In this document: positions 14,601 to 63,455 of the stretch, one piece after another
Numbering within the stretch: the first letter of the stretch is position 1
Layout of the letters: each line of letters starts with the position of its first letter
NCBI RefSeq assembly: GCF_036588685.1
Contig: NC_086386.1
Location: 1,302,001 to 1,366,000, forward strand
Source of the DNA: Mytilus trossulus
Lineage: Eukaryota
Direction of reading: 5' to 3'
Length of the DNA: 64,000 nucleotides
Position numbers and translations under genes: made by a program
The notes under the pieces: model-generated
The model's database searches: none
Told to the model about the DNA's origin: nothing
What the model saw: the letters and a program-made list of their open reading frames with translations, nothing else

Positions 14601-17600
14601 ATTTTAAATAGTTTAAGCATGTCACTAATGCAGTTTGCTCCGTTCTTTTACGCTAGTTTATTTATGGGAACAGCAAATATTTGCCTACACCTAGAGCGCT
14701 TCGATCCAAAAGAATTGCTGTATGTGTCCTATCAGAATGGAAATAAATCATGGGGGCTTGAATATATCTAGATTTTACCACGGGTTGTCCCTTTATGTCG
14801 ATATTTTACCCCTCGCTATCGCTCAGGGGTAAAAGATTTGTCATAAAGGGCCAACCCGTGGTAAAATCACGATATATTCAAGCCCCCATGAATTATTTCT
14901 TAATTTTAACCTGAGTGATAGGGAGGCGTAAAATATCGGCATAAAGGGACAACCCGTGGTAAAATCTAGATATATTCAAGCCCCCATGAATTATTTCGAT
15001 TCTAATAGGACAAATATGGCAATTCTGTTGGATTGAAGCGCTCTAGGTGGAGGCAAATATTTGCTGTTCCCATAAATAAACACACTATTTAATTGGCGTA
15101 AAAGAACAGAGCTAACTGAATTAGTGACATGCTTAAACTATTTTCAATAACGTATTTAGATCGTTTTGGATGAATCAAAATGAAAATTTACTTATATGTC
15201 TTATATATTTAAAAAAAAAATGGCTTATACCATATTTTAGCATTGTTTGTTTACATTTCCTTGTTGTGATGATTTTCGGTTCAGAAGCGTATATTTTCAC
15301 GTTAAATGCTTATATTCTTACGTCATCGTTCAATGACGTTTGGAAGCTCATTCATAAATAACATATGACGTGGGAGTATGATCGGAACAGCCCAGGGAAT
15401 ATATTCATATTTTACCACGGGTGTGTACTTTTGAAGGACCTCATGTTAGAATTAATTATAACATGTTAAATGTAGGAATGGTTGATGGTCATAAGTCATT
15501 GGTTAGTCCGAAAATCTTAATGTGCAATATAGGAGCACATGGTTGGATCAACTTTTTTTTTTATTAATCTATGTACTGCTAAGTTTACAATGAAAAATAT
15601 CAAAATATAAAGCTTTATGGCATAAAACTGTTACAGAGTTATGTTAAGTTCAACATTTTAAGGTATTTTACTTCATGTTGGCATGGAACTGAAGCACAAT
15701 GTTTTATGCTACTATAATTAAAAATCAGGCATGTTTTCTATTAAGTGGAAAGTATCTACATGTATCTCTGTCTATCTGGTATGGAATAGAATTTAATGTA
15801 ATAATCATATCTTTTATTTGCAGGGAGATAAAAAGAAAAATCACAAAACTTCAGAAAACTCCTTGGAAATGGCAAAAATCAAAGATCTGGAACGAGAGGT
15901 ATATTATTGACTTAAAAAAGAAGATGTGGTATGATTGACAATGTGACAACTCGCCACAAAACATGACCAAATGACACCAACATTCATAGCTATAGGTATA
16001 TGGCCTTCAACAATGAGCATAATGAGCATAACCCATACTCCAGTCAGCTTCAAACGGCCTAATTTATGTACTTTTTTTTTTAACAAAAAACAAATATGTA
16101 ACATAGCATCAAACGACAAACTCTGAATTACAGACTTGGGATAAGTATCTACGTACAGAATGTGTTGCTGCATTAATATGGAAAATAAATCTACAATTTT
16201 AATTTAAATCAAAAATTAATCTACAATTTTAAATTTTACTTCAAATTTTGAAATTGCATTATGGATTAAAAGTTTAATTCTTTTAACATGTTCTTCCCAC
16301 TAATAGCAATTTTTTGACAATATTACACATTAAAAATAAACGTATGGCAGTTATTTCTTCATTTAGACCTATTGATAAATCATTGTTTGCTTACAGATAA
16401 AAAGGTTAGTTCAGGAGAGAAATAACTTAGATAAGCAGTTAACACACAGAGAAGACGATATAGTTAAATTAGAAGGAAGATTACAAACAGCTCACACAGA
16501 TAAAATCTCCCTTCAGGCAAAAATAGCTTCACTAGAAAAAGAATTGAAGGAGCTAAAGAAAAGTAATGAAGTCCTCAGAAATAAGGTGTATATTTCTTTT
16601 TCATTAATAATACAGTTATTTTGGTGTCTTTTCGCTAGGCACAATTTCTGCCCTTTCTAACAATGCCATGTTTTTCTTGGCAGTAAACTTCTCTATCGGT
16701 CACCCCAGTCAACCAAACCATAGACCCTACCTTTCGGATTTATTGTAAATTTGTTTGTGGCCTGAATATACTGGAAAAATTTGCTTCTGAACATCGAGTA
16801 AATAATGATCAATCTATTACAAGACTTGTTCTGTAGCAAAGCTTTAATCTAATGTTATACTTAATTTCTGAATTTTGTGATTATCTCAAATATGAATTAC
16901 TAATATATATTGAAGTAGGGCACTCTTTTATTTCAATTTTTGTAAATTGTTTATATTTAACTGGACCCATTTAACTTTACTAAAGAATAACTTTAACATG
17001 TTTGTTGTACTTTTTTTCTGAGCAGATGTCAAATGCAGACACAGCATGTAAGAAACAAGAAAGTCTTCAGCATGAGTTATCTTCCCTGAAACACCAGATG
17101 GAGTGTAAGAATAAAGAAATATCTCGTGTTAAACATGAATTGGATATCACACAGAATCACCAGAACAATGAACTACATATTTTAGAAAATGTTGTCATGG
17201 TGATAGAAGAAAGAATCCATCATTTGGGTATGTTTTAATCACACCTATTTTTGAGATTTTTTTTTTTCTAGTGTTATCGTACAATAAATGATGGAATTCT
17301 TAGTTTAAATATATTTATTCCAGATATAAAATAACTCTTGAAATTACATACTATGAAGACAGCTAATGAATGCCCTGACATGAAAAATGTGAACCTACAT
17401 GACCTTTAAAAAAGAAGATGTGGTATGATTGCCAATGAGACAACTATCCACAAAATACCAAAATGACGCAAACATTAACAATTATAGGTAACCGTACGGC
17501 CTTCAACAATGAGCAAAGCCCATACTGCATAGCCAGCTATAAAAGGCCCTGATAAGACAATGTAACACAATTCAAACGAGAATACTAATGGCCTTATTTA

Positions 17601-20600
17601 TGTAAAAAAATTAAGGAAATACAATTATGTAACACATCAACGAACGACAACCACTGAATTACAGGCTCCTGACTTGGGACAGGCACATACATAAATAATG
17701 TGGCGGGGTTAAACATGTTAGCGGGATCCCAACCCTCCCCTAACCTGGGACAGTGGTATAACAGTACAACATAAGAACAAATTATTTATACAATATGAAT
17801 TATGAAAAACAAATATGAGACATGACCCAATGACAACCACTGAATTACAAGCTCCTGACTTGGTATAGGCACATAAAGAATGTTGCAGGGTTTAACATGT
17901 TTATGAGTGGTCAGCAATTCCCTTACCTGGGACAGTGGTTACAGCACAACAATTGAAGTCTGGTACTTTGATAGAGAATGATAAGAATTATGTCATGACA
18001 TTGTGATAATGAGAAAACATGGCATGTTGGATACGGTATAACAGTTGTAATATTTTACATTTTTTTTTTAGATATTGATGCTGATCATAACTGCACACCT
18101 AGGAACAACTCAGAAATAAGCAGTAAGTAACATACATTGGGGGGAAAACCGTTTATGTGGATTTACCTTCATTAGGAACATGCAATGCCGAAATATTTAC
18201 AAGCCAGGGATGTACACAAACAGAAACATTTTTAAAAGAGCTACTTTAACAACAATTATTTCACTTTAATTTCACATGCAAAACTTTTAATGGTATTTAA
18301 TTTGAAAAAAATCAACCCCAAACTAAAACTTTGTTTAGAAACCAAAAGTTTTAAAAATTTGTTTTACATCTTCCATTTTTAAAAAGTAAAACTTTCTTCA
18401 AAAATTTATATTTTCACTAAAATTTAATTTTGAATCTAGACATAAATTAAATTAACAAGAATAAAATGTTCATGTATATTGGATGGAAAAATGCAGTTGA
18501 AACCCTGTTTATGAGTCTAGACATTGAATATTCCACAAAGCAGCCAATCACATCCATATTAGATATTCCTATAAAAAATGAATTGCCAATAGCACAAAAT
18601 TGTAGATATCTTAAAATGATGGAAAAATTATTTGAAGATGTTTAACTTACTGTTGAAGTATTTTGGTAAAAATGTTTGATTTCTTATTACAGGTTTCAAA
18701 AGAAAAGGCAGTGAAGATTTGGCTGTCAATATGAAAACAGAAAACCCCAAGAAAATCATTGAGGTAAAACTGCATATCTATATAACAAGAAAATCGTTGA
18801 GGTAAAACTGCATATCTATATAACAAGAAAATTGTTGAGGTAGAACTGCATATCTATATAACAAGAAAATTGTTGAGGTATAACTGCATATTTATATAAC
18901 AAGAAAATCGTTGAGGTATAACTGCATATCAATATAACAAGAAAATTGTTGAGGTAAAACTGCATATTTATATAACAAGAAAATCGTTGAGGTATAACTG
19001 CATATCAATATAACAAGAAAATTGTTGAGGTAAAATTGCATATCTACATGTTTATACCAAGAAAATCATTGAGGTAAAACTGCATATCTACATGTTTATA
19101 CCAAGAAAATCGTTGAGGTAAAACTGCATATCTACATGTTTATACCAAGAAAATCATTGAGGTAAAACTGCATATCTACATGTTTATACCAAGAAAATCA
19201 TTGAGGTAAAACTGCATATCTACATGTTTATACCAAGAAAATCGTTGAATAAAATACCTCTGAGTGAGAAATTTGTAAAAAAAAAATTTACATATCTATA
19301 TATAAAGGTATAGAACCACTAATTCAGGCCTGGTTTGAAAGAAAGCAGTACATATTTTAAGCAAAATAGTTCCTACGCATAGCTGTTTCTTTGTCAATAG
19401 AAGGAATATTTTGGTAGTTTTGAAAGTTTCTTTTGATTAATAAAGAGGCAAAGTTGCTTGTCTTTATAACAAATGAGAAAATGTAAAAATTAAAAAAAGA
19501 AGAAATCTAGAAACAGAAATACAGCTGTAACTGTGTCATGGTATCAACTGATTCAAGGATAACCCTTTGTATCTATTACAGCTAATTTCCTAAAGCATGT
19601 AGAGCAAGACTTTAGTTAGCTTACTGGCTTTGTTTTTATATTGTACAATAATTAGGATAACACCCAATTAAATTCAAATATTATATATACAGGTTAAACT
19701 TTGCCTATATATATTGTTTAAAGATGTTAATTTTATTTACAAAGCTTGTATAAAAAATTATACAAACAAAGCAAGCAAGGCAACCAAAGTTTTGCTTTAC
19801 ATGCATTAGGAAATTAGCTGTAATGATATTTCATGATTTGACTCTGATTTGTAGAAGTTACAGAAACGTTTTAATGAGACAATTCAAGAGTTCGACAAGA
19901 AGATACAGTTGTTTAAGACCCGGTATGAAAGGATTATGGCGGACAAAGTAGATCTGGAACAAAATCTGGAGAAAAAGGAGATAGCCTTGAAAGATTATAG
20001 GGAGGAATCTGACACTCTTGAAAAAAACAGGTAATTTAGAATAACATGTGTAAAATAAAAAGGTGTGGTATGATTGCCAATGAGACAACTGTCCAACACA
20101 GTTCAAATGATAACGGATTTAAAGAACTATAGGTTACCTTATGACCATCAATAATGAACAAAACTCATACTGTATATAGTCAACTATAAAAAAAACCCAG
20201 ACATAACAAAATATGAAAATTTAGTGACAAAAACCGACTGGAACCTACAACTTCCATTTAATTACACACAAAAAACATGGGACAGTGGTATAAAAGCCAT
20301 ACATTAGAATAAACTATTAAAAGTCGACTCATCAGATCTTCACAATGTGGTCATGGGTGCATCGGTAGCGAGTGGTCTAAGTAGTTCTACTATTGTTATC
20401 ACTAGTCAGTCAACACTGAGGTTGTGACATTGATCCCTGCTCGTGCAAATGCTCTCGATTTCAATCTTTTTTTTCTGGGATTGTCAGTTTTCATATCAAA
20501 GGTCTGTGGTTTTCTCATAGCACTCTGGCTTCCTGCACCAATAAAGTTATAAAAATTTATTAAATTATGTTGATTGATTATTTACACTAATGATTCTACT

Positions 20601-23600
20601 GTAACATGTAATATACTGTACTATTTCAGGAGTATGTTATCAACTAAATATTCCACATTAAAAAAGATGATCAAAGATTTAAAGTCAGAAACCTGGAGTC
20701 AAGAGGATGATATCAGGTATTGAACCATTTTAAAGATTTATAAGTAAACACCAAGATATTCCAAGAGATTGAAGAAGTTAACCCGAGAATCTGGGAAAAT
20801 ATTGTGCAGATCCCTTATGTTTATGCACTTTCAATGAAGACTTCAAAGATAAGGTTTCAATTATCAATTGAATTTGTAACCTTTATTGATTGTTGTTTGT
20901 GTGGAAAGATAAGTTATTTTTTAGAGAGAAAAACATCTTTTATCCTGGGCCATTATATTTTCTGGTCTGTGCATCCATCAGTTTGTTGGTCACTTCGCTA
21001 GTCTCCTCAGTTTAAAGTTTTTAGTCAAGGTAGTTTTTGATGAAGTTGAAGTCTGAACAACTTGAAACTTAGTACACATGTTCCTTATGAAATGATCTTT
21101 CTGATTTTAATGTCAAATTAGAGATTTATCTCAATTTCACGGTCCACTGAACATAGGAAATTATAGTGCCGGTGGGGCATCCATGTACTATGGACACATT
21201 CTTGTATTTAGTAAACTTTTTTCTTTTTATAATAAATGAAGTGGACTATTACCATGTAACTAGTATTTCCAATGTATTATAACTAGGTATGGCAATTTAA
21301 AGCCAGGATAAACATGTGTTTTAAAATGGCTTAGAAGTTCAACAAAAAATGAAACTGGACATTTAGGAAGTTTTTATATATTTGAAACATTTCACTTTCC
21401 ACAAGGTAAAGAGAATACTGGATCTATGCAAAGTTAATAGAATTTAGCAGCACAGTAACTTTAAACCAGGTTGTGAGATTATCTTTTATTTTTATTTTTA
21501 GATATTTAAAAGGAGAGGTATTTTCCAAACAAGATAACTTGAAGGAAGAAGGACAGATATTGTTTGAGGTCAGAGCAGAGAAAGCCAGTCTCCTGGAGAA
21601 ATTGGATATCCTGGAAGAGTAAGATTATTTATACAACACCTTCATAGTCATTACACACTTCAAATAGCTTCCTTATTTATCAAGTTAAATAGCGTCCTTA
21701 TTCATCAAGTCAAATAGCTTCCTTATTCAACAAGTATGTAACAGAATGTGAAACATACAGATGTTTTTCTGTTGGTGTCAGTGTTATCGTTTTGTATTAA
21801 GCTTTTCATTTCAGATGATTGAAGAAATTATAATCCATATTTTGTATATTATGGTCTGAAGTTTTCATCTGACGTATGTCCATACTCCTTGACCTCATTT
21901 TTATGTGCATATTATAAAATTTTCATGTGTCTTTAAAGCATATTGTAGTTTTGATCCCACTGCTTTTTACAGCGAAAATCTGCATTTTGTAAAATTTATA
22001 ACTGTCTCAAATCGATTTATATGCTATCATACATGATGCAGTGATAGAATCCATTTTCAACAATCTTTGTAAAAAATAAAATTTTATAAAATTATTCTGA
22101 TTTTAGTGTAAGTGATGTCATTACTTCCCACGTAACTGTATCATTAGCCCTTTAGCCCTGATAATAACTTGATTTTAATTTCATATTTAACAAAAAAATA
22201 GAATTGTTTATATTGCTCTGAGATGGTGCAACTGTTTATAAGTCTATTTATATCTTATTTTTGATAGAGTATTTAATCATATAAATCATTTCAGAGAAAA
22301 TGGAACATTGAATGAAAACATCAAGACATTAACAGAAAAGTACCATGTTATTGAAGGTCAATTTGGTGAGTATTATTTTATTGAAGGTCAATTTGGTGAG
22401 TATTATATGTTATTGGAGGTCAATTTCGTGAGTATTATGTTATTGAAGGTCAATTTGGTGAGTATTATGTTATTGAAGGTCAATTTCGTGAGTCTATTAT
22501 TTTATTGAAGGTCAATTTGGTGAGTATTATGTTATTGAAGGTCAATTTGGTGAGTATTATTTATTGAAGGTCAATTTGGTGAGTATTATGTTATTGGAGG
22601 TAAATTTCGTGAGTATTGTTTTATTGAAGGTCAATTTCGTGAGTATTGTGTTATTGAAGGTCAATTCGTTGAGTATTATGTTATTGAAGGTCAATTTCGT
22701 GAGTCTATTATGTTATTGAAGGTCAATTCGTTGAGTATTATTTTATTGAAGGTCAATTTGGTGAGTATTATGTTATTGAAGGTCAATTTGGTGAGTATTA
22801 TTTTATTGAAGGTCAATTTGGTGAGTATATGTTATTGAAGGTCAATTTGGTGAGTATTATTTTATTGAAGGTCAATTTGGTGAGTATTATGTAATTGAAG
22901 GTCAATTTTGTGAGTATTATGTTATTGAAGGTCAATTGGTGAGTTTAATGTTATTGAAGGTCAATTTAGTGAGTATCAAGTTATTGAATTAAATTTGGTG
23001 AGTCTATTATTTTATTGAAGGTCAATTCGGTGAGTTTTTTATTGTGTTATAAAATATGTTAGGATTGTTTCATAAAATACATTAAAAAACAAAATAAAAA
23101 ATCCTAATAGGTTTCATGAAGTCCCATAAAATTTTAATTTATCGACTGTATTTCTATGAGGCCACAATCTTTAAAATCATCAGATAATCGATATCTTGAC
23201 TGCAGTTCCTGTCTGACGAAATTTTGAATTTGAACATATCATAGTAGTACTAACGAAAATAAAATAAAAGTTATGTTGATACTGTAATTACTTATCAAGA
23301 ATCAATATAATGTGTATCAATTCATTACACCAAAAATAAAATAGGCCTCCCAACACTGGACATTAGATAGATGTCTCAATGGCAGTCATGTCATATCTCT
23401 GAATTTTTATGATAGTTTGTATTTTTCAGCAGAGGAACAAAATCAGAATAATGTGAAATCCGATCAAGTTCAGTCCCAACTGGATGTTACTAAATGTCAT
23501 CTGATGGAGGTCCAGGACCAATATCAATTCCTACAGTCCAAGAATAAAGAACTGGTCCATTCCATCAACAAAGAGAAGGTAATAATTTATAGAAAACACG

Positions 23601-32787: not shown

Positions 32788-35700
32788 ATGTCATCAGCAA
32801 ATAACATTAGCGACGATTTTAAAGAGAAATGGTACGTATTATTGGGGTCAAACCTATAATCCGACAGTCTTATAATCTGACACTCCAAGAGTCTGTCAGT
32901 CCTATAATCTGACAGCTGATAATCTTACTCACGGTCACTTGTCTCTGAAAAATAGTGTCCATCCAGACTGTGTTTCCAGTTTTCATGGTGTCGCGCTAAA
33001 ATTTAAAACCAAGCAATCCTGCATCATGCTCAGACCCCAATACACTTTAATATCGCTATTTAGTCCATTCCGGGAAAAACAGTCATTTAAACAACTTCCT
33101 GTTTAGGTCACCGGCCGAAAAATGGAGGTCATCAGTAGTGAGCTGAGGGAGTAAAAACTTTAGAAAGTGATCATCAAGAAACTTTGATATAGTATGCTCC
33201 ACTTTTTTCGAAATTAAAATTGAAGTATAAAGTTATTTTGCTTGTAGTATTTACGGTAGTTTAAACAGGTCTCATTAAAAAGTATCAAGCATGGTGAATT
33301 GTTTAAACAGGGTCCCAGATAGCTTCAACTGGATGAAAAAGTTGTGTAATTTTATAACTAATCCGGAATGGAATAAATAGCGATTAGGTGTATGAAACCC
33401 ACCCTATATTTTTTTAAACAAAAAAATTATCAAATCAGTCAGTATAACATCTTGGTTTAATAATATAGGAGAAAAACCAGTTGTGTCCATCTTCTTTTAC
33501 ATTATTTCCGTCATTGCATGTTTGCCCAGCAAAATTGAATTTTATTTCTAGCAGACATGGTAAATATTGGCCTTTCACTGAAACACTGTCAGTTTGTGGT
33601 ACACATTCCCTTGACGCTCTCAGCAATTTATCAACAGATTTCCTTCTGATCTGGGGAACCGCAGCTATTCAACATCAAAAGAGGGAAATGATTATTTCGT
33701 TTTTCTGTCAAATGGGTCTGGAAAGTGCAAATTCTTGATTATCCTTACTGTCTTTATAAGAAATGATCTTATATAACTTATTTTAAAAAAAGAATTGTCT
33801 ACTACCCTATTATCTAAGCCATTTCATTAACTATGTATAAACATAAAATTAAATTTTATTTTAGTGAAGTCACTGGTGTTATAAATGGTAAGCGAGAGAA
33901 CTATTTAGATTGGCCTGATTATTTCATGGCAATTGCATTTCTTTCTGCACAAAGAAGCAAAGATCCTAGAACCCAGGTAAGATATATTGATGTTATTATG
34001 GTTAGGATTATATCTACTTGGGGAGTGACTCTTGAAATGGTGATACTAGCCTGATTATCAGTACTTGTTATCGTTTGGTATGATTTGGAATATATCCTTT
34101 CACCAATAGGTCATTGACAATTTGTTGGGGATGGGGTCTGTCATCAGTGTTGCTTTTCTACCAAAGACAACACAGGCTCCAGATAACCAGCTGTCTAAGC
34201 TAAGGTACAAATTGTGGATAAACCAGAGTTTCTCTGTAGATCAAAATATTTCAAAATTGTAAGGTTGGCCAGGTCAGTAGGTATTTGTTTTTTTTTAACC
34301 AAAACATAACTGAGGGGGGAAAGGAGGGGGTCTTGATTCTGAATTCCCGGGTTTAAAAACACTAATTTCGAGGTCCCGAAATTAAATAAAGTAAATCCCG
34401 TCATCCTAAAATCCTAAAAAAAAAAATCCTGGATCCGGAAAGGGCCAATCCCGAAATCCAGAGCTTAAAAACAGCTGATCCCGGAGTCCTGATAAAGGTC
34501 CTATTCCACCTCATAACTTATATGATCTAGACAAGAAAATGATGATCAGATCATGAAAAACATCAGTAGAAGTTACAAAACTTTTAAAACAGTTATTGTT
34601 ATAAAATTGCTCAGGTAGGCTTCTTTTTAGGTGGGTGGGTCGGCAACATCAAACGAATGAAATTTTATTTTTGGCCTTATTTCTATATTGTGAAATTTTC
34701 CAATTGTGAAAGAAAAGGTTTTACTAAATTAAAAAAATTACACATTTAAAATTTTGCTATCATTACTTTTCAAGAAGGCAGCATATACATAAAAAAAATT
34801 CAATTATAAATCTAGCAATAACATTGTTTAAAAAACCACTATGGTAAATGTACTAAAAAAAATCTGAATATTAAGTGAGTATATAATAGTTTTGATAATA
34901 CTGTACTGAATGTATATGTAAAAAACTAAAACAACTAATAGATAGTTTATATCTGTTAACTTCAAAAGGTAATGCGGTAGCAGATATTGGTTTCCTTCAT
35001 TATGACAGTAACTTGATAATCTTGAAATACAACCCCTAAAAACACCATATGACACCAAAAGAAATATACATCTTTAATTTCTGTTTACCTTTCAGGTAGG
35101 GGCTTGTATTGTTAACGAGGAAAATAAAATTGTTGGAATTGGATATAATGGTATGCCAATTGGTTGTCATGACGATTTAATGCCATGGGGACGTGAACAT
35201 TCAGATGTTTTACAAACAAAACAGCTTTATGGTATTATATAGTTTTTACACCTAAGTTTAGAAGAAATTACATCATGTACATTGCTCTTCTCTAGCAGCT
35301 AGCCTGTATGTTTCCAAATAGCAGTTTTCAATGACAACTCAAATTTTGCCTGGGCTACTGAAGTGTCATTTGTAACACCATGAAGTTATTAAGTTTCTAT
35401 GACGTCTAATATTTTACATTAAATTGTGTGGTCAGAGGTAAAAAATGTCTAAATTTATTGCACATGATACAGTTTATATTTGTTGATTTGTATAAAAAAA
35501 ATGCAGAACATTTTGGGAAACCTCAAAACAAAAGGCAATTTAGGATTGCTTACTTCTCCATAAAATTAAACTGAATATGTGTTTATTTTCAGTTTGCCAT
35601 GCAGAATTAAATGCTGTTCTGAACAAGAACTCATCAGATGTGAATCATTATGTGTTTATTTTCAGTTTGCCATGCAGAATTAAATGCTGTTCTGAACAAG

Positions 35701-38152
35701 AACTCATCTGATGTGAATCATTATGTGTTTATTTTCAGTTTGCCATACAGAATTAAATGCTGTTCTGAACAAGAACTCATCTGATGTAAATCATTATGTG
35801 TTTATTTTCAGTTTGCCATACAGAATTAAATGCTGTTCTGAACAAGAACTCATCAGATGTGAATCATTATGTGTTTATTTTCAGTTTGCCATGCAGAATT
35901 AAATGCTGTTCTGAACAAGAACTCATCCGATGTGAATCATTATGTGTTTATTTTCAGTTTGCCATGCAGAATTAAATGCTGTTCTGAACAAGAACTCATC
36001 CGATGTAAAGAACTGTACAATATATGTGGCTTTGTTCCCATGTAATGAGTGTGCTAAAGTTGTTATACAGTCCGGTATCAAACAAGTCGTTTACTATTCA
36101 GATAAATATCATGAAAAACCAGAATTCATTGCTTCAAGGAAAATGATGGACATGGCTGGAGTGAAATACAGGTAAATAAATAATGGACATGGCTGGAGTG
36201 AAATACAGGTAAATTAATGATGGACATGGCTGGAGTGAAATACAGGTAAATTAATGATGGACATGGCTGGAGTGAAATACAGGTAAATTAATGATGGACA
36301 TGGCTGGAGTGAAATACAGGTAAATTAATGATGGACATGGCTGGAGTGAAATACAGGTAAATTAATGATGGACATGGCTGGAGTGAAATAATGGCTGGGG
36401 TGAAATACAGGTAAATTAATAATGGACATGGCTGGGGTGAAATACAGGTAAATTAATAATGGACATGGCTGGGGTGAAATACAGGTAAATTAATGATGGA
36501 CATGGCTGGAGTGAAATACAGGTAAATTAATGATGGACATGGCTGGAGTGAAATACAGGTAAATTAATGATGGACATGGCTGGAGTGAAATACAGGTAAA
36601 TTAATGATGGACATGGCTGGAGTGAAATACAGGTAAATTAATGATGGACATGGCTGGAGTGAAATACAGGTAAATTAATGATGGACATGGCTGGAGTGAA
36701 ATAATGGCTGGGGTGAAATACAGGTAAATTAATAATGGACATGGCTGGGGTGAAATACAGGTAAATTAATAATGGACATGGCTGGGGTGAAATACAGGTA
36801 AATTAATGATGGACATGGCTGGAGTGAAATACAGGTAAATTAATGATGGACATGGCTGGAGTGAAATACAGGTAAATTAATGATGGACATGGCTGGAGTG
36901 AAATACAGGTAAATTAATGATGGACATGACTGGAGTGAAATACAGGTAAATTAATGATGGACATGGCTGGGGTGAAATACAGGTAAATTAATAATGGACA
37001 TGGCTGGGGTGAAATACAGGTAAATTAATGATGGACATGGCTGGAGTGAAATACAGGTAAATTAATGATGGACATGGCTGGAGTGAAATACAGGTAAATG
37101 AATAATGGACACAGCTACAGTTTAATAACTAGCATCACAAGGATATGTCATTGGAAATAGGCATGTGTATGAGAAAAGTTCAGACATGTGTTAGAAAACA
37201 TCAAAATTGTTTGTTGAGAAAATCAAACACTTGTAAGAAAAGTTCAGACATGTGTTAGAAAACATCAAAATTGTTTGTTGAGAAAATCAAACACTTGTAA
37301 GAAAAGTTCAGACATGTGTTAGAAAACATCAAAATTGTTTGTTGAGAAAATCAAACACTTGTAAGAAAAGTTCAGACATGTGTTAGAAAACATCAAAATT
37401 GTTTGTTGAGAAAATCAAACACTTGTAAGAAAAGTTCAGACATGTGTTAGAAAACATCAAAATTGTTTGTTGAGAAAATCAAACACTTGTAAGAAAAGTT
37501 CAGACATGTGTTAGAAAACATCAAAATTGTTTGTTGAGAAAATCAAACACTTGTAAGAAAAGTTCAGACATGTGTTAGAAAACATCAAAATTGTTTGTTG
37601 AGAAAATCAAACACTTGTAAGAAAAGTTCAGACATGTGTTAGAAAACATCAAAATTGTTTGTTGAGAAAATCAAACACTTGTATTTAAAGAAAAGTTCAG
37701 ACATGTGTTAGAAAACATCAAAATTGTTTGTTGAGAAAATCAAACACTTGTAAGAAAAGTTCAGACATGTGTTAGAAAACATCAAAACTGTTTGTTGAGA
37801 AAATCAAACACTTGTAAGAAGAGTTCAGACAGACAGCAATCAAAAAAAAAGGGAAGACATTTAGTGGTTAACACACTCCTTTTTCAACAATAAACTGTAC
37901 ATACACAAAATATTTGGCTCTCAATCTGTCGGACTTTAAAAAAAATATAAAAAAAAGTTTTACCATTCAATCTCAACTGCTGATATATAATTACTCCCCA
38001 AAAGAGTGTTTACAAAAGGCAATTTACAACTTTTGTTACTTTTATTTTTCAGACAACATATTCCCAAGAAAACGCAGATTCTAATAGATTTCAGTGTGAT
38101 TGAAAATATGACACAAGAAGTTAAAGACGTACTAAACAAGGAATCAGATTAA
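32788..38152 (+). CDS. DCTD: Deoxycytidylate (dCMP) deaminase, 5 exons, 201 aa
   Basis: Exons 32788-32831 (least certain), 33865-33976 ([29 protein letters not shown]), 35096-35231 ([21 protein letters not shown]), 35958-36171 ([20 protein letters not shown], with the HAE and PCxxC zinc motifs) and 38053-38152. Total 606 nt with consistent phases. Confidence 0.95.
34312..34512. mobile_element. MITE with GAGG...CCTC termini and 6-bp TSD
   Basis: ATAACT|GAGGGGGGAAAGGA ... TCCTATTCCACCTC|ATAACT, with internal ATCCCG/ATCCTG subrepeats. Confidence 0.65.
35576..36006 (+). repeat. 73-bp tandem array (6 copies) spanning the DCTD exon 4 acceptor
   Basis: Unit TATGTGTTTATTTTCAG|TTTGCCATGCAGAATTAAATGCTGTTCTGAACAAGAACTCATCNGATGTGAATCAT. 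AG ends at 35592, 35665, 35738, 35811, 35884 and 35957 (authentic). Confidence 0.97.
36143..37110 (+). repeat. 37-bp tandem array (about 26 copies) spanning the DCTD exon 4 donor
   Basis: Unit ATGATGGACATGGCTGGAGTGAAATACAG|GTAAATTA with the authentic donor at 36172. A truncated variant recurs 313 bp apart (36391 and 36704), showing higher-order duplication. Confidence 0.97.
37172..37830. repeat. 64-bp minisatellite (about 10 near-identical copies), purely intronic
   Basis: Unit AGAAAAGTTCAGACATGTGTTAGAAAACATCAAAATTGTTTGTTGAGAAAATCAAACACTTGTA starting at 37172, 37236 and onwards. Confidence 0.95.
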
Positions 38153-39766
38153 CATACATTACTTTATATATTGTGATCAAATCAGAATACATTGCTTAGC
38201 ACATGGACATTGGAATAACACATGTTACAAGATTGAATAAAAGACACTTAACATTACAATAGAACAATGGAGTCATGAATACTAGTTGGATTTTCATTGG
38301 TTTAGAATAATGAACAGTAGAGACCTGAATACTAGTTGGATTTTCATTGGTAGGGAGAAACAAGGAACTGAGATACTCTATACAATACAAATCTTAGCAT
38401 CTTCCATAAGACCACATAACAAAACAGATGATTGAATAGAGATTTTTCTCGAACTATTAAAATTGTTTCCAGGGAAAATAAATGAAACCACAATACTTGA
38501 TACCAGGGATTACAGATAATGGCAGAAAGTAATAAATAGCCGTCATAATTATTCTCATTGTTTAAGTTATATCTATGTATAAAGTCTGTGATGGAAGTGA
38601 ATAGTATAATAAATATAGAATGTAAATAGTTTGATATTTATTTATCTTTTTGAAGTAAAACTGTTATGAAATGGTTCCTAATCTGAGGGATTATTGTGCT
38701 TGGGCATTCTTCTGAAGCCACAATGTCAAATTATTTTTCACCACAAAAAACTGTAAAATATCAAACGGGAAATATGAAGTTTAATTGCCATTGAGATAGC
38801 TATACATTACCGTTATAAATACTCTACAAATTAAAGGAAATATGTGGTATGATTGCCATTGAGATAGCTATACATTACCGTTATAAATACTCTACAAATT
38901 AAAGGAAATATGAGGTATGATTGCCATTGAGCCAGCTTTACATCCGAGTCCAAAGAAACGATAAGGTTACAACTAAAGGGTACCATACAACCTTGTCATT
39001 CAACAATGAGCAAAATCCATAATGTATAGTTGTCAATAAGATTTCCTAGCATGACATTATTTCAAATGATTCAACAGAAAACAAAAATATGACACCTAAA
39101 AAACAAAAAGGAAGCAAGCTTGTGTGTTATTGTAAGAGGTCAGCCTGCATTTGACATTGGAAAGAGGACAAGAAACATTAAAGATATCAGTTTGAAACGA
39201 TAGGACATGTATGATCCTATGGAAAACAAAAGTATTGACATAATCCTGTACTTGAGAAATCTTTTCAGAAAAATTTGAAAGATTTGGTTTGTTATTGTCT
39301 CGACTGCGATGAGTCGCAAAATGTATATATAGGGATCACTATCCTGTAGTAAACTATTTGTATAAAGCTTTGTATTTCAGAGGGTAGAATATATGGAGGT
39401 TTCACACCTTTTTTGCAGATGTTTTATGTTGCAAAGTTTCTGTCTGTCATATGTCCATTGTCCTTGACCTCATTTTCAGTTCCTTGCAAGGTCGAAACTT
39501 TCTCCAAGACAGAGTTCACCTGAGCTGATCTCATTTTATGTATCATTGATCAATGTTTAAGTCCTTTTCTGAGATACTATAAGCAGTACTATAGGTCAAC
39601 TCTATATTTGGTGTATGAAATTATTGTTAAGTAAACAAGTCAGTCTGGCAGACCTGTTTCATTTGACCTTTACCTCATTTTTATTCACAGTTTATAATAT
39701 TATGTTTTCCTGGTGAAATCTGTTTCTCAGATAATTCAACTATATTTGTTTCACAGAATGAACACA

Positions 39767-40905
39767 TGGTGACTATGTCTGGCAGAGTTTACCTCATGGT
39801 GACTTTGTCTGGCAGAGTTTACCACAGGGTGACTATGTCTGGCAGAGTTTACCACAGGGTGACTATGTCTGGCAGAGTTTACCTCAGGCTGACTATGTCT
39901 GGCAGAGTTTACCTCAGGGTGACTATGTCTGGCAGAGTTTACCACAGGGTGACTATGTCTGGCAGAGTTTACCTCAGGGTGACTATGTCTGGCAGAGTTT
40001 ACCACAGGGTGACTATGTCTGGCAGAGTTTACCTCAGGGTGACTATGTCTGGCAGAGTTTACCACATGGTGACTATGTCTGGCAGAGTTTACCTTATGGT
40101 GACTTTGTCTGGCAGAGTTTACCACAGGGTGACTATGTCTGACAGAGTTAACCTCAGGGTGACTATGTCTGGTAGAGTTTACCACAGTGTGACTATGTCT
40201 GGCAGAGTTTACAACAGGGTGACTATGTCTGGCAGAGTTTACCTCAGGGTGACTATGTCTGGCAGAGTTTACCACATGGTGACTATGTCTGGCAGAGTTT
40301 ACCTTATGGTGACTTTGTCTGGCAGAGTTTACCACAGGGTGACTATGTCTGACAGAGTTAACCTCAGGGTGACTATGTCTGGTAGAGTTTACCACAGTGT
40401 GACTATGTCTGGCAGAGTTTACAACAGGGTGACTATGTCTGGTAGAGTTTACCACCGGGTGACTATGTCTGGCAGAGTTTACCTCAGGGTGACTATGTCT
40501 GGCAGAGTTTACAACAGGGTGACTATGTCTGGTAGAGTTTACCATAGGGTGACTATGTCTGGCAGAGTTTACCACAGGGTGACTATGTCTGGCAGAGTTT
40601 ACCTCAGGGTGACTATGTCTGACAGAGTTTACCACATGGTGACTATGTCTGGCAGAGTTTACCACAGGGTGACTATGTCAGGCAGAGTTTACCTTGAGGG
40701 TGACTATGTCTGGCAGAGTTTACCTCAGGGTGGCTATGTCTGGCAGAGTTTACCTCAGGGTGACTATGTCTGGCAGAGTTTACCTCAGGGTGGTTATGTC
40801 TGGCAGAGTTTACCACAGGGTGACTATGTCTGGCAGAGTTTACCACAGGGTGACTATGTCTGGCAGAGTTTACCACAGGGTGGCTATGTCTGGCAGAGTT
40901 TACAT
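39767..40905. repeat. 30-bp minisatellite (about 38 copies)
   Basis: Unit GTGACTATGTCTGGCAGAGTTTACC(A/T)CAGG. It accounts for the long periodic ORFs on both strands. Confidence 0.97.
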
Positions 40906-45181: not shown

Positions 45182-45897
45182 CCAACTGTTTCTATACTTC
45201 GGGTTTTGTCAGTAAGGATATCTTGACTGTGGGATGAACTAACATTTTCTGCTCCAACTGGTTCTATACTTTGGGTTTTGTCAGTAAGGATATCTTGACT
45301 GTGGGATGAACTAACATTTTCTGCTCCAACTGTTTCTATACTTTGGGTTTTGTCAGTAAGGATATCTTGACCGTGGGATGAACTAACATTTTCTGCTCCA
45401 ACTGGTTCTATACTTTGGGTTTTGTCAGTAAGGATATCTTGACTGTGGGATGAACTAACATTTTCTGCTCCAACTGTCTCTATACTTTGGGTTTTGTCAG
45501 TAAGGATATCTTGACCGTGGGATGAACTAACATTTTCTGCTCCAACTGTTTCTATACTTTGGGTTTTGTCAGTAAGGATATCTTGACCGTGGGATGAACT
45601 AACATTTTCTGCTCCAACTGTTTCTATACTTTGGGTTTTGTCAGTAAGGATATCTTGACCGTGGGATGAACTAACATTTTCTGCTCCAACTGTTTCTATA
45701 CTTTGGGTTTTGTCAGTAAGGATATCTTGACTGTGGGATGAACTAACATTTTCTGCTCCAACTGTTTCTATACTTTGGGTTTTGTCAGTAAGGATATCTT
45801 GACTGTGGGATGAACTAACATTTTCTGCTCCAACTGGTTCTATACTTTGGGTTTTGTCAGGAGAATATCTTGCCTGTGGGATGCTCCAACTAGTTCT
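45182..45897. repeat. 72-bp minisatellite (about 9.5 copies)
   Basis: Unit CCAACTGTTTCTATACTTTGGGTTTTGTCAGTAAGGATATCTTGACTGTGGGATGAACTAACATTTTCTGCT starting at 45182, 45254 and onwards. Confidence 0.95.
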
Positions 45898-48527: not shown

Positions 48528-51500
48528 TCAATCGTCCTCAATAGACCCATGAAAAATCCAACTTTCTTCTACAATAACTTTAACTCGTTTCTCATACTCC
48601 CTTTTATTGTCTTTGTATAGCTGGGCTGCCACATTATTTGCAGGGCTATTTGGATTTGGTTCATCAAGCAAAGACTGAAATAATACCCAAATTGGGACTA
48701 AACTTTATTTTAAAATTTACAGTATTTTATGACTATATGATAACGTTCATTGTTAGAATTTATAACCATTTAACTACTATTGAATAGATGAACTGTTAAC
48801 ACAGAGATTTGTCTGTGTGGCCTTAATACAATTTATCATTGCAGACAACAAGTTACCTCCCTTACCAACATGATCAAGATCTCTGAAATGTTTAAGTCAT
48901 ACTACATAAATCATTATCACAGAAAAAATCCTAAAAACTTTCTCATTTCAGATATCTGATCATAAAAATGCTTTGATTTGATTGTTCTCAATCATAAGTT
49001 TTTTTTGTAAAACTTGATAAAACACAAGTGAAAATAAAATAAATCCCTTGAATTTTACAACTGATTAAAAACATGATGCTGTAACTAGCAACAGATGAAA
49101 AATTACCCATTTGTCAGGCATATTTTTACTCTTTTTTTTTGGTGCTTACTTAACAATACCATAACTGACATTGGACTTAACAAGACTGGAACACATCTAA
49201 ATGGTACAATTCAATCAAACATTAACAAACATATGTTGCCCTTTCAGAAATGACTGTTAGGGGCTGTCTCATAACATATTTATATTGAAATTCTAATACT
49301 TTACGAGTTCAATTGACATGACTATTTTCTGAATTTCAGAATTATAAACAGCTCAATATGCTGATCAACATTCTAAAATGATGTTAGTTATAAAATCTAC
49401 ATGTAGTTTAAAATTAACGACACCAAATAAGGAAAAGTTCTGAGACAACCCCTTACAAGGAAAAGATATGTGTACATTATCAATGGAGAGATTTTTAACT
49501 GCATGTCTAATTAATGAAAGCTGTTGCTATGACAATTCTTTAGTTGTGTCCTCCTCATCGTCCGAATCATCTTGCCAGCTTTGTTGCACTATTGATGCTA
49601 CTTTTTTCTCATATTCTCGCCGATTTTCTCTATATAACTGAGCAGCTTCATTATTTGCTGGGCTATTTGGATTTGGATCGTGAAGTAAAGACTAAAATCA
49701 GAAAGAGACAATAATGTGCTAGGATGATGACAGATATGGATGATGAAGATGACCTAAAGTAATGTCGTCAACAACGGGATGTTAAACCAAAATAATTTAT
49801 TTTCTGTTTATTTCTAATTGTTTAATTTCCAAGCACCTGTACAAAGTAACATGATGTAAGGGAAGCAACCAACTGAAGACAATAATCTCTCAATTCCTTA
49901 TAAATGACTCATATGATAATTTCACTGTACATATACACATTCATATTTCAATATTTGTTAAATTTGCTTGGCTATAACAAGTAAATGCCTTGACCTTGAG
50001 TAAATTTTTAAATATATTTTAGTTTTTTTTCAATTTTTATTAAAATACCAGCAAAGTAAAATGTGTAATGTCTTGTAAAATCTTACAAATGATACAATGG
50101 TTGATGATTAATACCCATGTTCTGATATAGAGGTAAATATGGCTAGTGTTATATGTAACCTTACCTGTATAGAGGTAAATATGGCTAGTGTTATATGTAA
50201 CCTTACCTGTATAGAGGTAAATATGGCTAGTGTTATATGTAACCTTACCTGTATAGAGGTAAATATGGCTAGTGTTATATGTAACCTTACCTGTATAGAG
50301 GTAAATATGGCTAGTGTTATATGTAACCTTACCTGTATAGAGGTAAATATGGCTAGTGTTATATGTAACCTTACCTGTATAGAGGTTAAAATGGCTGATG
50401 CATCATATGTAGGACTCTACCTGTATAGAGGTAAATATGGCTAGTGTTATATGTAACCTTACCTGTATAGAGGTAAATATGGCTAGTGTTATATGTAACC
50501 TTACCTGTATAGAGGTAAATATGGCTAGTGTTATATGTAACCTTACCTGTATAGAGGTTAAAATGGCTGATGCATCATATGTAGGACTCCATCTATTTTG
50601 TAAAATATCTAAACATATACTACCATCAGCATAAACTGAAACAATATAATGTTAGTAAATAAATACATTATCAACAAGCAATTCATACAAATTCATAAAA
50701 TAACAAGAATGTGTCCAAAGTACACGGATGCCGCATTCACACTATCATTTTCCATTTTCAATGGACCCTGAAATTTGGCAAAGAATTTAATTTGGCATTA
50801 AAATAAGAAAGATCATATACCATAGGGAACATGTAATTGGACTTCAACTTCATTAAAAACTACATTGACCATGTTGACCAAAAACTTTAACCTGAAACTC
50901 GCACTTTCATATTCTATGTTCAGTGGACTGTGAAATTGGGGTTAAAAGTCTAATTTGGCTTCAAAATTAGAAATATCATATCATAAGGAGCATGTGTATA
51001 AAGTTTCAAGTTGATTGGACTTCAGCTTCATCAAAAACTACCTTGACCAAAAACTTTAACCTGAAGCGGGACAGATCAACAGACGTACAGACCAGAAACG
51101 TAATGCCCCTCTACTATCGTAGGTGGGGCATAAAAATAATTGAATACATTCCTGTACCAAAATGTGTTGTGGATTGATGGTTATTCTGGAACTTTGTATA
51201 AAACACAAAGAAAGATGCGTTTGTTAACTTGTCATTATATACAGCTCATAAATTAATCAGTCAAATTTATAAGTAAGTGTATGTTCACTTGTGTTAATAT
51301 GTCTTTTGATTGAGTCCAGCCATTTCAACTGATATTTTATAGTGTATGTGTCTTTCTATGTTGTGATGTTACACTATTGTTTCTGGAAAGGGTGAGGGTT
51401 GTACCTACATGTAATAAAACAATGTACCCTATCAAAACGTTTAAAAGCACCGCTGTATTTGTTTGCACCTGTCCAAAGTTAGGAATCTGATGTTCAGTAG

Positions 51501-54247
51501 TTGTTGTTTGTTGATGTGGTTCATAAATGTTTCTCATTTCTCTTTTTATTTTGTAGATTTGATTCTTGGTTTTCTCGTTTAAATGGTTTTACACTAGTCA
51601 TTAATGGAGCCCTTTATAATTTGCTGTTTGGTGTGAGCCAAGGATCCGTGTTGAAGACCATACTTTGACCTATAATTGTTTACTTTTACAAATTGTGACT
51701 TGGATGGAGAGTTGTCTCTTTGGCACTCATAACATCTTCTTATACATGTATCTATGATGACCTTCTGCTGTTGTTTTTTATTTGGTCGGGTTGTTGTCTC
51801 TTTGACACATTCCCCATTTCCATTCTCAATTTTATCTATGAGTTTGAATGAGCACCAGGACCTAATAATATGTCAAGCTCTACATCATTCTTAGGATGTT
51901 TGTACTAAATACACACTTACCATTAGGGTGAAACATTTTAGATACAAATCGTACTGTAGGAAATTTGTACTAAATACACACTTACCATTAGGGTGAAACA
52001 TTTAAGATACAAATCGTACTGTAGAAATCTATACTAAATACACACTTACCATTAGGGTGAAACATTTAAGATACAAATCGTACTGTAGGAAATCTGTACT
52101 AAATACACACTTACCATTAGGGTGAAACATTTTAGATACAAATCGTACTGTAGGGGGTTTATTTGGATATTCTTCAGTGAATTCTACTGTTAATTTAAAT
52201 GTACCATCTTCAAAAGGTGTGTCATGTGGCCTAAAACAGAATATATAACAAATAAAGTTCATGAAACAAGCAATAAAATAAGACTGTAAACAAACTAAGC
52301 TCAAATTTCAAAATGTATGTTAAGAAATCATTTTATAATTATAGGGATGCAGTAGTGTCAAGTCTCTTCTTTTAACATGAGACTCCACATATGCATGCTT
52401 AATTGGTGGCATTTTTCTTTGATTCATTGTTCTTCTCTGATGTTTTCTGGAAACCATAACAGGGTCAGGATCGATATCATGTATCATAACAGAGTTCTCA
52501 CATGAGCCCATGAGTCATAATGAAAATCTGTATTTGAAAAATGTCAAAATAATTCTGTTGCCCTGTTTATCATTTCTTTGATCAGAGTCATTTAACCATA
52601 TTGTAATCAGGATACTAAGGAAAATAAATGTAGAATGGTATAGAAAGAAAACAGCTCTAGAGAGGGAGTTTTTTGTTCGAGATAAGTGTTCTTCAAAGTT
52701 TTAAGATTATGCCCCCATATTGTTGAGTCTGCAGTTTAAATGTTGTAAACTTGTATAACTGTTTCTTTGGTTTATTTAAAGGCACTGGCTACGGTTACAC
52801 GGAAATGTAACAATAATAAAAATATTATTGTTACATTGGAGACTAAATGCCAGAATGCATGGTTGGGCAAGGACCTGTTTAGTTACGAATGTAACAATAA
52901 TTATTGAGGCTACGGTTACATTGCGTTATTGTTACATGAAAAACAGCAATGTACGATGGGACTAGTAATATGTACTAAATTATAAAAGTTGTAGACATTT
53001 ATTTTATATTTACAATACATAAATTTATTACATACAATTTATTTACTGTAACTTTTTATTTACAATGACAATTTCTACAAATCCAGTAACTGGTTTTGAA
53101 AGTCCGACATTTTTTATGAACACAATTACATCCTCCACGGAAACGTGTACATACAAAAGTTCTTAGTATTTAAGTTACAGTTAGCAAACTTTGCTTTTGA
53201 TGTATCAATTTGCGTCAAGTTGTATAGCTGTATGAAATTTATGTCTTGATATTGTTTCAGTTTCGTTTAAAACGCATCCCAAGTTTTCTTTTTTTTCTCT
53301 CACCCTAAACACTATTTGTTGAATAATAATATTTACTATCTATCATTATTACAAGTATTATTTGGTACATATGAAAGAATTAAGCAACACGACTATAGAA
53401 GATTTAAGTTTAATAAACAAGCGTACTGTTTTTCATGTAACAATAAAGTTATGTAACCGTAGCCTCAGTAATTATTGTTACATTCGTAATTTTTCGGTTC
53501 CTCGCCAACTTTGCATTCCGGCAATTAGTCTCCCATGTAACAATAATATTTTTATTATTGTTACATTTCCATGTAACCGTAGCCAGTGCCTTATTTAAAT
53601 TGTATAATATTTAACTTTTAATTGACTTTGTGGTTCAGTTCAGACTACACCAGGATCTAATTAATTATTCATGCGACCAGGATCCCTGAAATCACGCTAC
53701 CAGAAGATTTCTAGGGTCACCCTGTTAAAGTGTATCATAGGCACTGGCAGTTGCATTGGCATAAGTAGATCTGTGGCTTATATGGCAATATGGCTAAAAG
53801 ATACACAGTTTTTTTGTAGAAGATGATGCATGTTTGTAATTGGCTTTTTATTTATTCTTTCCATGAAAGGGCACCTGTAACTTATTCAAATGTTCCTAAA
53901 TGTTTAATGTTGTTGTGCTGGAATTAGTAAACTCTGATTATTCAATGACAATGAATAGGGATTGACCTGATTATTATGACAAATTATGTTTCTCCACAAA
54001 ACTTACCCAAATATTACTGCATTCCACAACATTATGTTATTGTCTGTTGGGGCACCACTTACACCAGCAGGTGGATCTTCTTGTAATCTGAAAATGAACA
54101 GTAAGAACTTTGTAAAAAAAATATATAAACAAAAACGGAAGCCATGTTTGATAACTGTTTTGAAGTACATAATTCGTTTTAAATGAGAATAGGGCTACAC
54201 TACCTTTTAAAATCTCTCATCAATCGTCTCCTAGCAGGTGTTGACAT
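48528..54247 (-). CDS. UBE2A: Ubiquitin-conjugating enzyme E2 RAD6 (UBE2A/UBE2B orthologue), isoform using the distal last exon, 158 aa
   Basis: Exons 54247-54204 ([15 protein letters not shown]), 54087-54007 ([27 protein letters not shown]), 52230-52115 ([38 protein letters not shown]), 50635-50547 ([30 protein letters not shown], with the catalytic Cys) and 48674-48528 ([48 protein letters not shown]). Confidence 0.96.
49527..49691 (-). CDS. UBE2A: Alternative (proximal) terminal exon of RAD6/UBE2A with acidic tail, giving a 164-aa isoform
   Basis: Acceptor TCTTTCTGATTTTAG, then phase-0 [54 protein letters not shown]. It is an intact paralogue of the 48674-48528 exon. Confidence 0.88.
50125..50590 (-). 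repeat. 42-bp tandem array (10 donors) spanning the UBE2A exon 4 donor
   Basis: Minus-strand unit GTAAGGTTACATATAACACTAGCCATATTTACCTCTATACAG. Donors at 50546 (authentic), 50504, 50462, 50420, 50374, 50332, 50290, 50248, 50206 and 50164. Confidence 0.96.
50702..51136 (-). mobile_element. Short HINE-like dispersed element; related copies at about 20930-21205 (+) and 55765-56040 (+)
   Basis: Shared ends TTTTTATGCCC(C)ACCTA...TAGTAGAGGG and GGCATCCGTGTACT.TGGACAC.TTCTTGTT, and shared core GGTCAAGGTAGTTTTTGATGAAG.TGAAGTC. Confidence 0.7.
51899..52154 (-). repeat. 65-bp tandem array (4 copies) spanning the UBE2A exon 3 donor
   Basis: Minus-strand unit CCTACAGTACGATTTGTATCTAAAATGTTTCACCCTAATG|GTAAGTGTGTATTTAGTACAGATTT. 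Donors at 52114 (authentic), 52049, 51985 and 51920. Confidence 0.95.
52781..53590. mobile_element. Mutator/MULE-like non-autonomous element
   Basis: 9-bp TSD TTATTTAAA (52772-52780 and 53591-53599). ~160-bp imperfect TIRs GGCACTGGCTACGGTTACA... / ...TGTAACCGTAGCCAGTGCC with internal TGTAACAATAAT palindromic subrepeats. Confidence 0.85.
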
Positions 54248-62783: not shown

Positions 62784-63455
62784 TTTTAATCGTCCAATCA
62801 AAATTCATGTTACAAAGGATAAGTTCTTGCAATTCACGTTGGGACTAGTAACGTGAATCAGCCAGCGGATAGAAACTGTCTCAAATAAAACGACGTTTAT
62901 CAACAATATAATTCATTTTACATAAAACAGTTTTACAGCTCAAGGTATGTTTTCCTCGTAAAAAAACTAATAACACAGAAAAAATGCAAGTGCTGTACAA
63001 GAAAAAAACCAAAACAAAATAAAAAGGGGGGTTGAAAAACTTCTTGGTGCAAAACTTTTATACTCGTATTATTTTGTGCACTTGAGTTTGAACTACTATC
63101 TATCGAAACTTTCTTTGAAATAGTTTTCCTGTACTGTTTGTTTTTTATTATGTGTATTGTAACATTTGATAATCGAGTCTTATCAAAATTAAGGGTAGAG
63201 AGGGGTGATGTGAATTACACAGGTTTATGACATCTAGTAAATTCTATATGACTCACCCTTGGCTGTTGGATTGTGTTATGACAAGTATCATACATGTAGA
63301 TGGCCATGTTGGTTGATAAGTTAGTGTAGCAACTTCAATAAAAGTGAATAATTCTATTATATTAAACATAAAATAATTCACACTCTGTAGTTTTGAAAAT
63401 AGTTTTTAAAACATTTGTTACATATCTTTACCTTACCATTATTTTTTTCTAGAAA

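Follow-up and report, generated by a model that had tools for sequence, protein, structure and literature searches.

Tandem arrays repeat both splice junctions of the catalytic exon of a mussel dCMP deaminase gene, with the innermost pair of sites used in the main mRNA

The closest described counterparts of the splice-junction arrays in the mussel dCMP deaminase gene (DCTD), the subject of this report, are the 37-bp variable number tandem repeat in intron 7 of the human F7 gene and the minisatellites of amphioxus known as 'mirages'. In the F7 repeat, according to passages of Borensztajn et al. 2006 (PMC1557585), splicing takes place at the most upstream donor alone; across 50 constructs, the most upstream of the identical donors wins, while the others are silent although functional. 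Early globin constructs cited in the Discussion of the same paper used the proximal copy when donor or acceptor sites were duplicated; a study by another group, also cited there, had opposite results. The amphioxus mirages, as set out in parts of two papers (PMC3087553, PMC3902484), occur in Adh3, the globin genes BflGb6 and BflGb9, troponin C, and PGBD5, and are reported there to lie at either boundary of an exon, to differ in length between haplotypes (6 versus 3 units), and to leave splicing regular. A search of one library, at the level of main texts, for bivalve or Mytilus repeats at exon–intron boundaries returned no bivalve paper, and the papers that did describe such repeats were those on F7 and amphioxus; a further paper (PMC4039745) deals, in the part that bears on this subject, with a different kind of intronic repeat. 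Here we analyse a 64,000-nucleotide (nt) stretch of the Mytilus trossulus genome (hereafter the window; C14:1302001-1366000; genome size 1.30 Gb, G+C content 33%), in which exon 4 of DCTD, the catalytic exon, carries a tandem array on each of its two edges. We consider it probable (about 0.8) that these arrays are two junction, or 'mirage'-type, minisatellites, of which the spare splice-site copies are passengers and the innermost pair is spliced.

The DCTD exons were located by tblastn with dCMP deaminase proteins, themselves found via exon 4, together with direct reading of the sequence, and the gene is on the + strand. Sequencing support was taken from Logan contigs, not raw reads, of two DNA runs (X1 and X2) and two RNA-like runs (X7 and X11), with positions 33800-36500 as the stretch covered. 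Runs X1 and X2 come from two studies and carry two organism labels, and several public runs that contain the stretch are labelled 'mollusc metagenome'. The elements of the gene and of its arrays, in window coordinates, are:

33865-33976, + strand: DCTD exon 2 (tblastn, sequence reading, and an RNA-contig joint)
35096-35231, + strand: DCTD exon 3, ending in QTKQLY (tblastn, and RNA-contig joints on both sides)
35576-36006, + strand: acceptor array, 73 bp x 5.9 (Tandem Repeats Finder, motif counts, and contigs)
35958-36171, + strand: DCTD exon 4, catalytic, 214 nt, with the HAE and PCNEC zinc-site motifs (Pfam, tblastn, and RNA contigs)
36142-37111, + strand: donor array, 37 bp (Tandem Repeats Finder, motif counts, and depth in DNA runs X1 and X2)
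37172-37831, + strand: third array, 64 bp x 10.2, purely intronic, in intron 4 (Tandem Repeats Finder)
38053-38152, + strand: DCTD exon 5, the last coding exon, with the stop codon TAA at 38150-38152 (tblastn, sequence reading, and RNA contigs of X7 and X11)

The translation of exon 4 (VCHAEL...FPCNEC...GVKYR) matches the Pfam family dCMP_cyt_deam_1 (PF00383) with 48.3 bits (cut-off 25), and the closest named proteins in a homology search with the exon 4 open reading frame (ORF) are annotated 'dCMP deaminase', at 89% identity. The gene, with a zinc-binding domain in which HAE and PCxxC are present, is predicted to encode dCMP deaminase. The homology search with the exon 4 ORF yielded no match above 90% identity, and hence no record of the species itself; six ORFs of the array and the exon, looked up as exact sequences, were all absent from the protein collection (0/6). 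The possibility that the locus is a DCTD pseudogene was rejected: none of the four coding exons seen is disrupted, and the RNA runs show them covered and spliced.

On the acceptor side, Tandem Repeats Finder gives a period of 73, 5.9 copies, 98% matches, and a score of 813. Each unit comprises the end of intron 3 and the start of exon 4, with an intron part of 17 nt in the assembly and 24 nt according to an X1 contig. The 11-mer TTTATTTTCAG is present in 6 copies, at 35582 + 73n, the last of which is the real acceptor, and the 17 intron bases ahead of the AG are identical in 6/6 units, confirming the claim, made in an earlier sequence-based note on this DNA (the original prediction), of six acceptor copies with identical pyrimidine tract and AG. 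The first exon base is 35593, 35666, 35739, 35812, or 35885 for the five spare acceptors and 35958 for the real acceptor. Candidate branch points were picked from the sequence by the yUnAy rule: the five repeat-internal acceptors, including the real one, share the candidate CTCAT, 33 nt upstream and within the preceding unit, and the outermost acceptor has the candidate CTTAC, at 40 nt. Units 3 and 4, two of the five upstream copies, read CATACAGAA (H-T-E) through a G>A substitution; the change from HAE to HTE in two copies is thus as first described, and what was taken for relaxed constraint shows only that the intronic copies are untranslated. Other variants are common to neighbouring units, with T in units 2-3 and C in units 5-6 at one site. 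The arrays are not a chance occurrence; the 73-bp unit matches this locus only (one candidate place in the 1.30-Gb genome, with three matches, all at the DCTD locus).

At the left edge of the acceptor array, four letters that follow 35575 in an X1 contig are missing from the assembly; when they are included, the left flank and the unit-to-unit junction are identical. A 4-bp deletion at this edge (35575) seems to be present in the assembled haplotype. Since the left flank with the X1 letters equals the unit-to-unit junction, the founding acceptor unit would comprise 24 intron bases and 49 exon bases, joined with at most 1-2 shared bases.

On the donor side, Tandem Repeats Finder resolves 36142-37111 into three rows with a period of 37 (6.7, 8.5, and 11.0 copies; 97-99% matches; scores 484, 591, and 739). 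The unit consists of the last 30 nt of exon 4 followed by GTAAAT, in 25/25 units. The sequence ACAGGTAAAT is present in 25 copies, of which the first is the real donor (last exon base 36171) and 24 are spares (last exon bases from 36208 to 37093); the predicted array therefore stands, and the predicted count, of about 26 donors with about 25 downstream copies, is corrected to 25, or 1 + 24. Two of the units are variants of 54 bp, and the array contains two copies of a 313-bp higher-order block made up of one 54-mer and seven 37-mers; the duplicated block is a signature of unequal exchange or slippage within the array. The right flank of the array is still similar to the start of the unit, and may be either an old, decayed unit or the short direct repeat that seeded the first duplication. 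The third array, also in intron 4 (98% matches, with GTAAGA...TTCAG in each unit), showed no link to an exon edge.

Both junction arrays are real, occur in samples that carry three organism labels, and vary in length, because they have multi-copy depth in two DNA runs and the unit is unique to the locus; the proposed check of the arrays against sequencing data thus comes out in their favour, in the contigs of both DNA runs. In X1, the acceptor unit has a depth of 196 + 92 versus 36.5 for unique sequence, corresponding to ~8 copies, as compared with 5.9 copies in the assembly; in X2, it has a depth of 255 + 30 versus 6.7, corresponding to ~43 copies. The difference in acceptor copy number between the two runs is about five-fold, as estimated from depth alone. 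Donor-array words have a depth of 473 in X1 and 92 in X2, ~13x the unique depth in both. In addition, the 73-bp unit is present in DNA run X2 and in RNA run X11 as a contig of 103 letters, that is, period + 30, the form that a perfect tandem repeat takes in such assemblies. These data bear directly on the possibility that the arrays were over-expanded or invented by the assembler. The data are contigs only, with no read seen to span a whole array, which speaks for such an artefact, but the 103-letter contig recurs in a DNA run and an RNA run, both arrays are multi-copy in runs from two studies with two organism labels, and the depth estimate for X1 (~8) is close to the 5.9 assembled copies; we therefore consider an artefact very improbable.

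Splice-site use was read from the contigs of X7 and X11, in which exon bins are covered and unique intron bins have a depth of 0, except for a dispersed high-copy repeat in intron 2. A joint between exon 2 and exon 3 is present in both runs (33973->35093, cut +3, GT..AG). In X11, a contig with a depth of 1382 consists of 29 letters of exon 3 followed by 35957-36090; because this contig extends beyond the point at which the array copies and the real exon diverge, the innermost acceptor is used. Contigs ending at 36171 continue with the first letters of exon 5 in 2/2 RNA runs (X7 and X11), so that the innermost donor is used. The main mRNA form is that with the innermost acceptor and the innermost donor.

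The consequences of site choice for the coding sequence were read on contiguous genomic stretches, with the exons not joined. Six acceptors and 25 donors give 6 x 25 = 150 acceptor–donor pairs with sequence-identical signals, in line with the predicted number of about 150 near-equivalent pairs. Just one of these pairs, formed by acceptor 6 and donor 1 (214 nt), is both open and in the reading frame, which upholds the claim that the innermost pair alone yields the enzyme; RNA contigs show this pair in use. The upstream acceptors and downstream donors are unproductive in the manner foreseen, the former frameshifted or stopped and the latter reading AG-G-TAA: each of the five upstream acceptors runs into a stop after 116-161 nt, and every downstream donor reads AGG TAA directly past exon 4. 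Spare acceptors and donors, if used, would thus give rise to stop-containing RNAs.

Several observations weigh against the reading of the spare sites as silent passengers. An X7 contig joins exon 3 to 35592, with only 30 letters behind the joint, and is compatible with several copies of the acceptor. Words of the acceptor array are present in RNA, with a depth of 194 versus 1382-2509 for exon 4 in X11, and of 28-37 versus 75-83 for exon 4 and 27.8 for the exon 2-3 contig in X7; likewise, the donor-array bin 36166-36256 has a depth of 205 versus 2509 in X11 and 18.8 versus 83 in X7. The unique part of intron 3 has a depth of 0 in the RNA runs while array words are present; contig depths sum over copies, however, and a depth hole proves nothing, and the unique part of intron 4 lies beyond the stretch covered (33800-36500). 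Finally, arrays on exon edges are commoner in the window than under a uniform model, which random passengers alone do not explain. The array words in RNA could represent minor use of outer sites. They could equally represent pre-mRNA, present at well under 1% in X11 and at a few per cent in X7, with its signal multiplied by the 10-40 copies that are collapsed in the contigs.

The same array words are relevant to the proposal that the arrays serve as a dosage device, in which some transcripts use the spare sites, acquire a stop codon, and decay, so that array length sets the level of dCMP deaminase. This proposal draws on the fact that 149/150 site pairs lead to a premature stop, and on the depth of array words in RNA, which amounts to 8-14% (X11) or 34-49% (X7) of the depth of exon 4 while unique intron 3 has a depth of 0. 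The depth of a collapsed repeat sums its copies, however, and the pre-mRNA fractions given above, with 10-40 copies, could account for these figures; moreover, the main joints carry the innermost pair, the copy number of the acceptor unit differs about five-fold between the two DNA runs, and the presence of like arrays in the neighbouring genes IK, UBE2A, and probably HMMR points to a general process. A dosage device is therefore improbable. The possible copy-number-dependent control of dCMP deaminase suggested in the original prediction is left without support, in that nothing links array length to output; the copy number differs about five-fold between the DNA runs, and the arrays in unrelated neighbour genes speak for a general repeat process and not for a device specific to DCTD.

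Two further candidates were rejected. Recursive splicing fails on both sides of the exon: exon 3 joined to an outer acceptor rebuilds no donor, and the AGs in the 37-bp unit have no preceding polypyrimidine tract. RNA structure that would mask the outer sites was found in none of three folds (z-scores 0.61, -1.02, and 0.43), and the only acceptor covered by an 11-nt stem is the outermost one. At their outer edges (35565-35598 and 37093-37126), the two arrays are 71% complementary over 34 nt, probably by chance in AT-rich sequence.

Under the preferred reading, that of two junction minisatellites with passenger copies, a 73-bp piece over the intron 3/exon 4 boundary and a 37-bp piece over the exon 4/intron 4 boundary would each have been duplicated in tandem, and both arrays would then have expanded and contracted by slippage or unequal exchange, with the outer copies coming to lie in introns 3 and 4. 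During splicing, acceptor and donor would be paired across the exon, as in exon definition. If the signals are equivalent (same candidate branch point, identical sites), position must decide, and exon-definition pairing predicts the choice of the closest acceptor–donor pair, which is the pair observed; on the donor side, the most upstream of the identical donors would win, by analogy with human F7 intron 7. The spare copies would be passengers, neutral or mildly harmful, and their number would vary between individuals. The DCTD arrays show the features of this class. Specifically, their units (73 and 37 bp) are arranged head to tail with 97-99% matches and span an exon–intron boundary together with its splice signal; splicing occurs at the authentic copy in RNA contigs, with minor use of other copies possible; and length varies, from ~8 (X1) to ~43 (X2) acceptor units, as judged by depth only.

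Elsewhere in the gene, X7 and X11 disagree in the sequence that their RNA contigs carry ahead of exon 2 (upstream of 33864), a sign of alternative first exons or of a difference between species. In X11, this sequence has an in-frame ATG if base 33864 is counted with it, and exon 1 was sought by means of the 19-letter start of the X11 contig, which is not found in the window at up to 2 mismatches. Intron 2 contains, at 34346-34527, a dispersed repeat of very high copy number, with word depth up to 121,101 in X1 versus ~36 for unique sequence, and this repeat is abundant in the RNA runs too. Further DCTD-like exons lie at C5:30090805-30091008 (59% identity) and at C14:20700490-20700687 and C14:20820619-20820822 (52% identity each), and junction arrays are absent at the two of these three paralogous deaminase exons that were scanned.

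The window contains 26 tandem arrays, which make up 17.8% of its bases, and those at or near other exon ends are:

1-859, - strand: IK/RED donor array, 77 bp x 11, at an exon end in Pfam RED_N; the array runs off the window start
2034-2518, - strand: IK/RED donor array, 43 bp x 11, at an exon end in Pfam RED_N
18748-19248 and 22345-23044, + strand: arrays of an HMMR-like gene, likely donor arrays, identified by open frame and motif only
50126-50589, - strand: UBE2A/RAD6 donor array, 42 bp x 11, at a Pfam UQ_con exon end
51901-52154, - strand: UBE2A/RAD6 donor array, 65 bp x 3.9, at a Pfam UQ_con exon end

Each of the IK/RED arrays begins inside an exon and repeats its donor, GTAGGT or GTAAGG, and the exon ends at the UBE2A arrays read ...ILTSIQ|GTAAGG and ...MFHPN|GTAAGT. 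In the HMMR-like gene, which has HMMR_N matches at 16379-17235, the first units of the arrays start in short open frames ending in GAG|GTAAAA and TTG|GTGAGT. Two other arrays, at 39763-40903 (30 bp x 38) and 45182-45883 (72 bp x 9.8), have frames that stay open because the period is a multiple of three, and may be coding, intronic, or derived from a junction. At the far edge of the window, 63453-63998 is an open frame of 182 amino acids that continues to the window edge and has Thioredoxin and Phosducin Pfam matches (a TXNDC9-like gene).

A further possibility is that exon edges are hot spots, at which duplications of the junction are favoured or kept, either by a mutational process linked to transcription or splicing or by selection that favours additional U1-binding sites. 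Such a process would have hit DCTD exon 4 on both sides, and is compatible with the reading of its arrays as junction minisatellites. In the window, 6/26 arrays (8 with HMMR) contain the junction of a homology-supported exon, as compared with 1.0-2.5 expected, and the probability of at least 6 is 0.0006-0.045 under a uniform model with 40-100 junctions, a count that was assumed, not measured. In an annotation-free comparison, a near-consensus donor, defined as a match at at least 8/9 bases, is present in 4/17 array units versus 2.8% of background windows (P = 0.001). Arrays are denser in the gene-dense window (0.27 per kb) than in 20 evenly spaced loci of 10 kb (0.06 per kb), and may cluster in genes. 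In those 20 loci, however, a small sample, a donor is present in 1/12 arrays at 8/9 (expected 0.42, P = 0.35) and in 5/12 arrays at 7/9 (expected 2.9, P = 0.15), and the donor-to-acceptor ratio of 7:1 is by itself not significant (P = 0.07). The excess of arrays at exon edges is thus significant in this window and not shown in the small sample of 20 other loci, and we regard exon-edge hot spots as rather unlikely. A still slightly more doubtful proposition is that a process at work in mussel genomes directs tandem duplications to splice junctions or keeps those that arise there, the candidates being breaks where spliceosomes stall or R-loops form, and selection of extra U1 sites in AT-rich introns. 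If it were true, a mechanism acting across the genome would shape introns and be able to seed new exons and introns, and DCTD exon 4, hit on both edges, would be one of its visible products. Because such arrays are common here, an exon bracketed on both sides would be expected by chance many times in the genome, and the interest lies in the excess of arrays at exon edges in this genome, not in the DCTD locus itself.

The locus does provide a natural series for splice-site choice, with six identical acceptors, 25 identical donors, one essential 214-nt exon, and a variable copy number, and its description as a natural test of exon definition is a fair one. Arrays of this kind mislead gene predictors and short-read callers, and the H-T-E copies could enter the real exon through gene conversion.

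Among known systems, the DCTD arrays resemble unproductive splicing coupled to mRNA decay (poison exons or sites) in that alternative sites bring premature stops; unlike poison exons or sites, they have a very variable copy number and show no evidence of regulated use, or of conservation beyond related samples. The type to which they belong is that of the amphioxus mirages and the F7 intron 7 repeat. As in F7 intron 7, going by the passages of PMC1557585 that describe it, the first unit lies over the exon–intron boundary, and the real donor is followed by identical pseudo-donors; the F7 unit happens to have the same length, 37 bp, without being homologous. Unlike F7, for which the same passages give 5-9 donors, DCTD has 25 donors, exon 4 has an acceptor array too, the organism is a mollusc, and the account is read from sequence and contigs, whereas that of F7 comes from experiment; in effect, the DCTD locus extends the arrangement of F7 intron 7 to the acceptor side. 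The acceptor array has the layout of amphioxus BflGb6, which, in the part of PMC3087553 concerned, has its spares upstream and the authentic copy last. As in the amphioxus mirages, so far as they are portrayed in the sections drawn on here, the real copy adjoins the body of the exon, the number of units is variable, and splicing is regular; unlike in the mirages, both edges of one exon are amplified in DCTD, with higher copy numbers and in another phylum.

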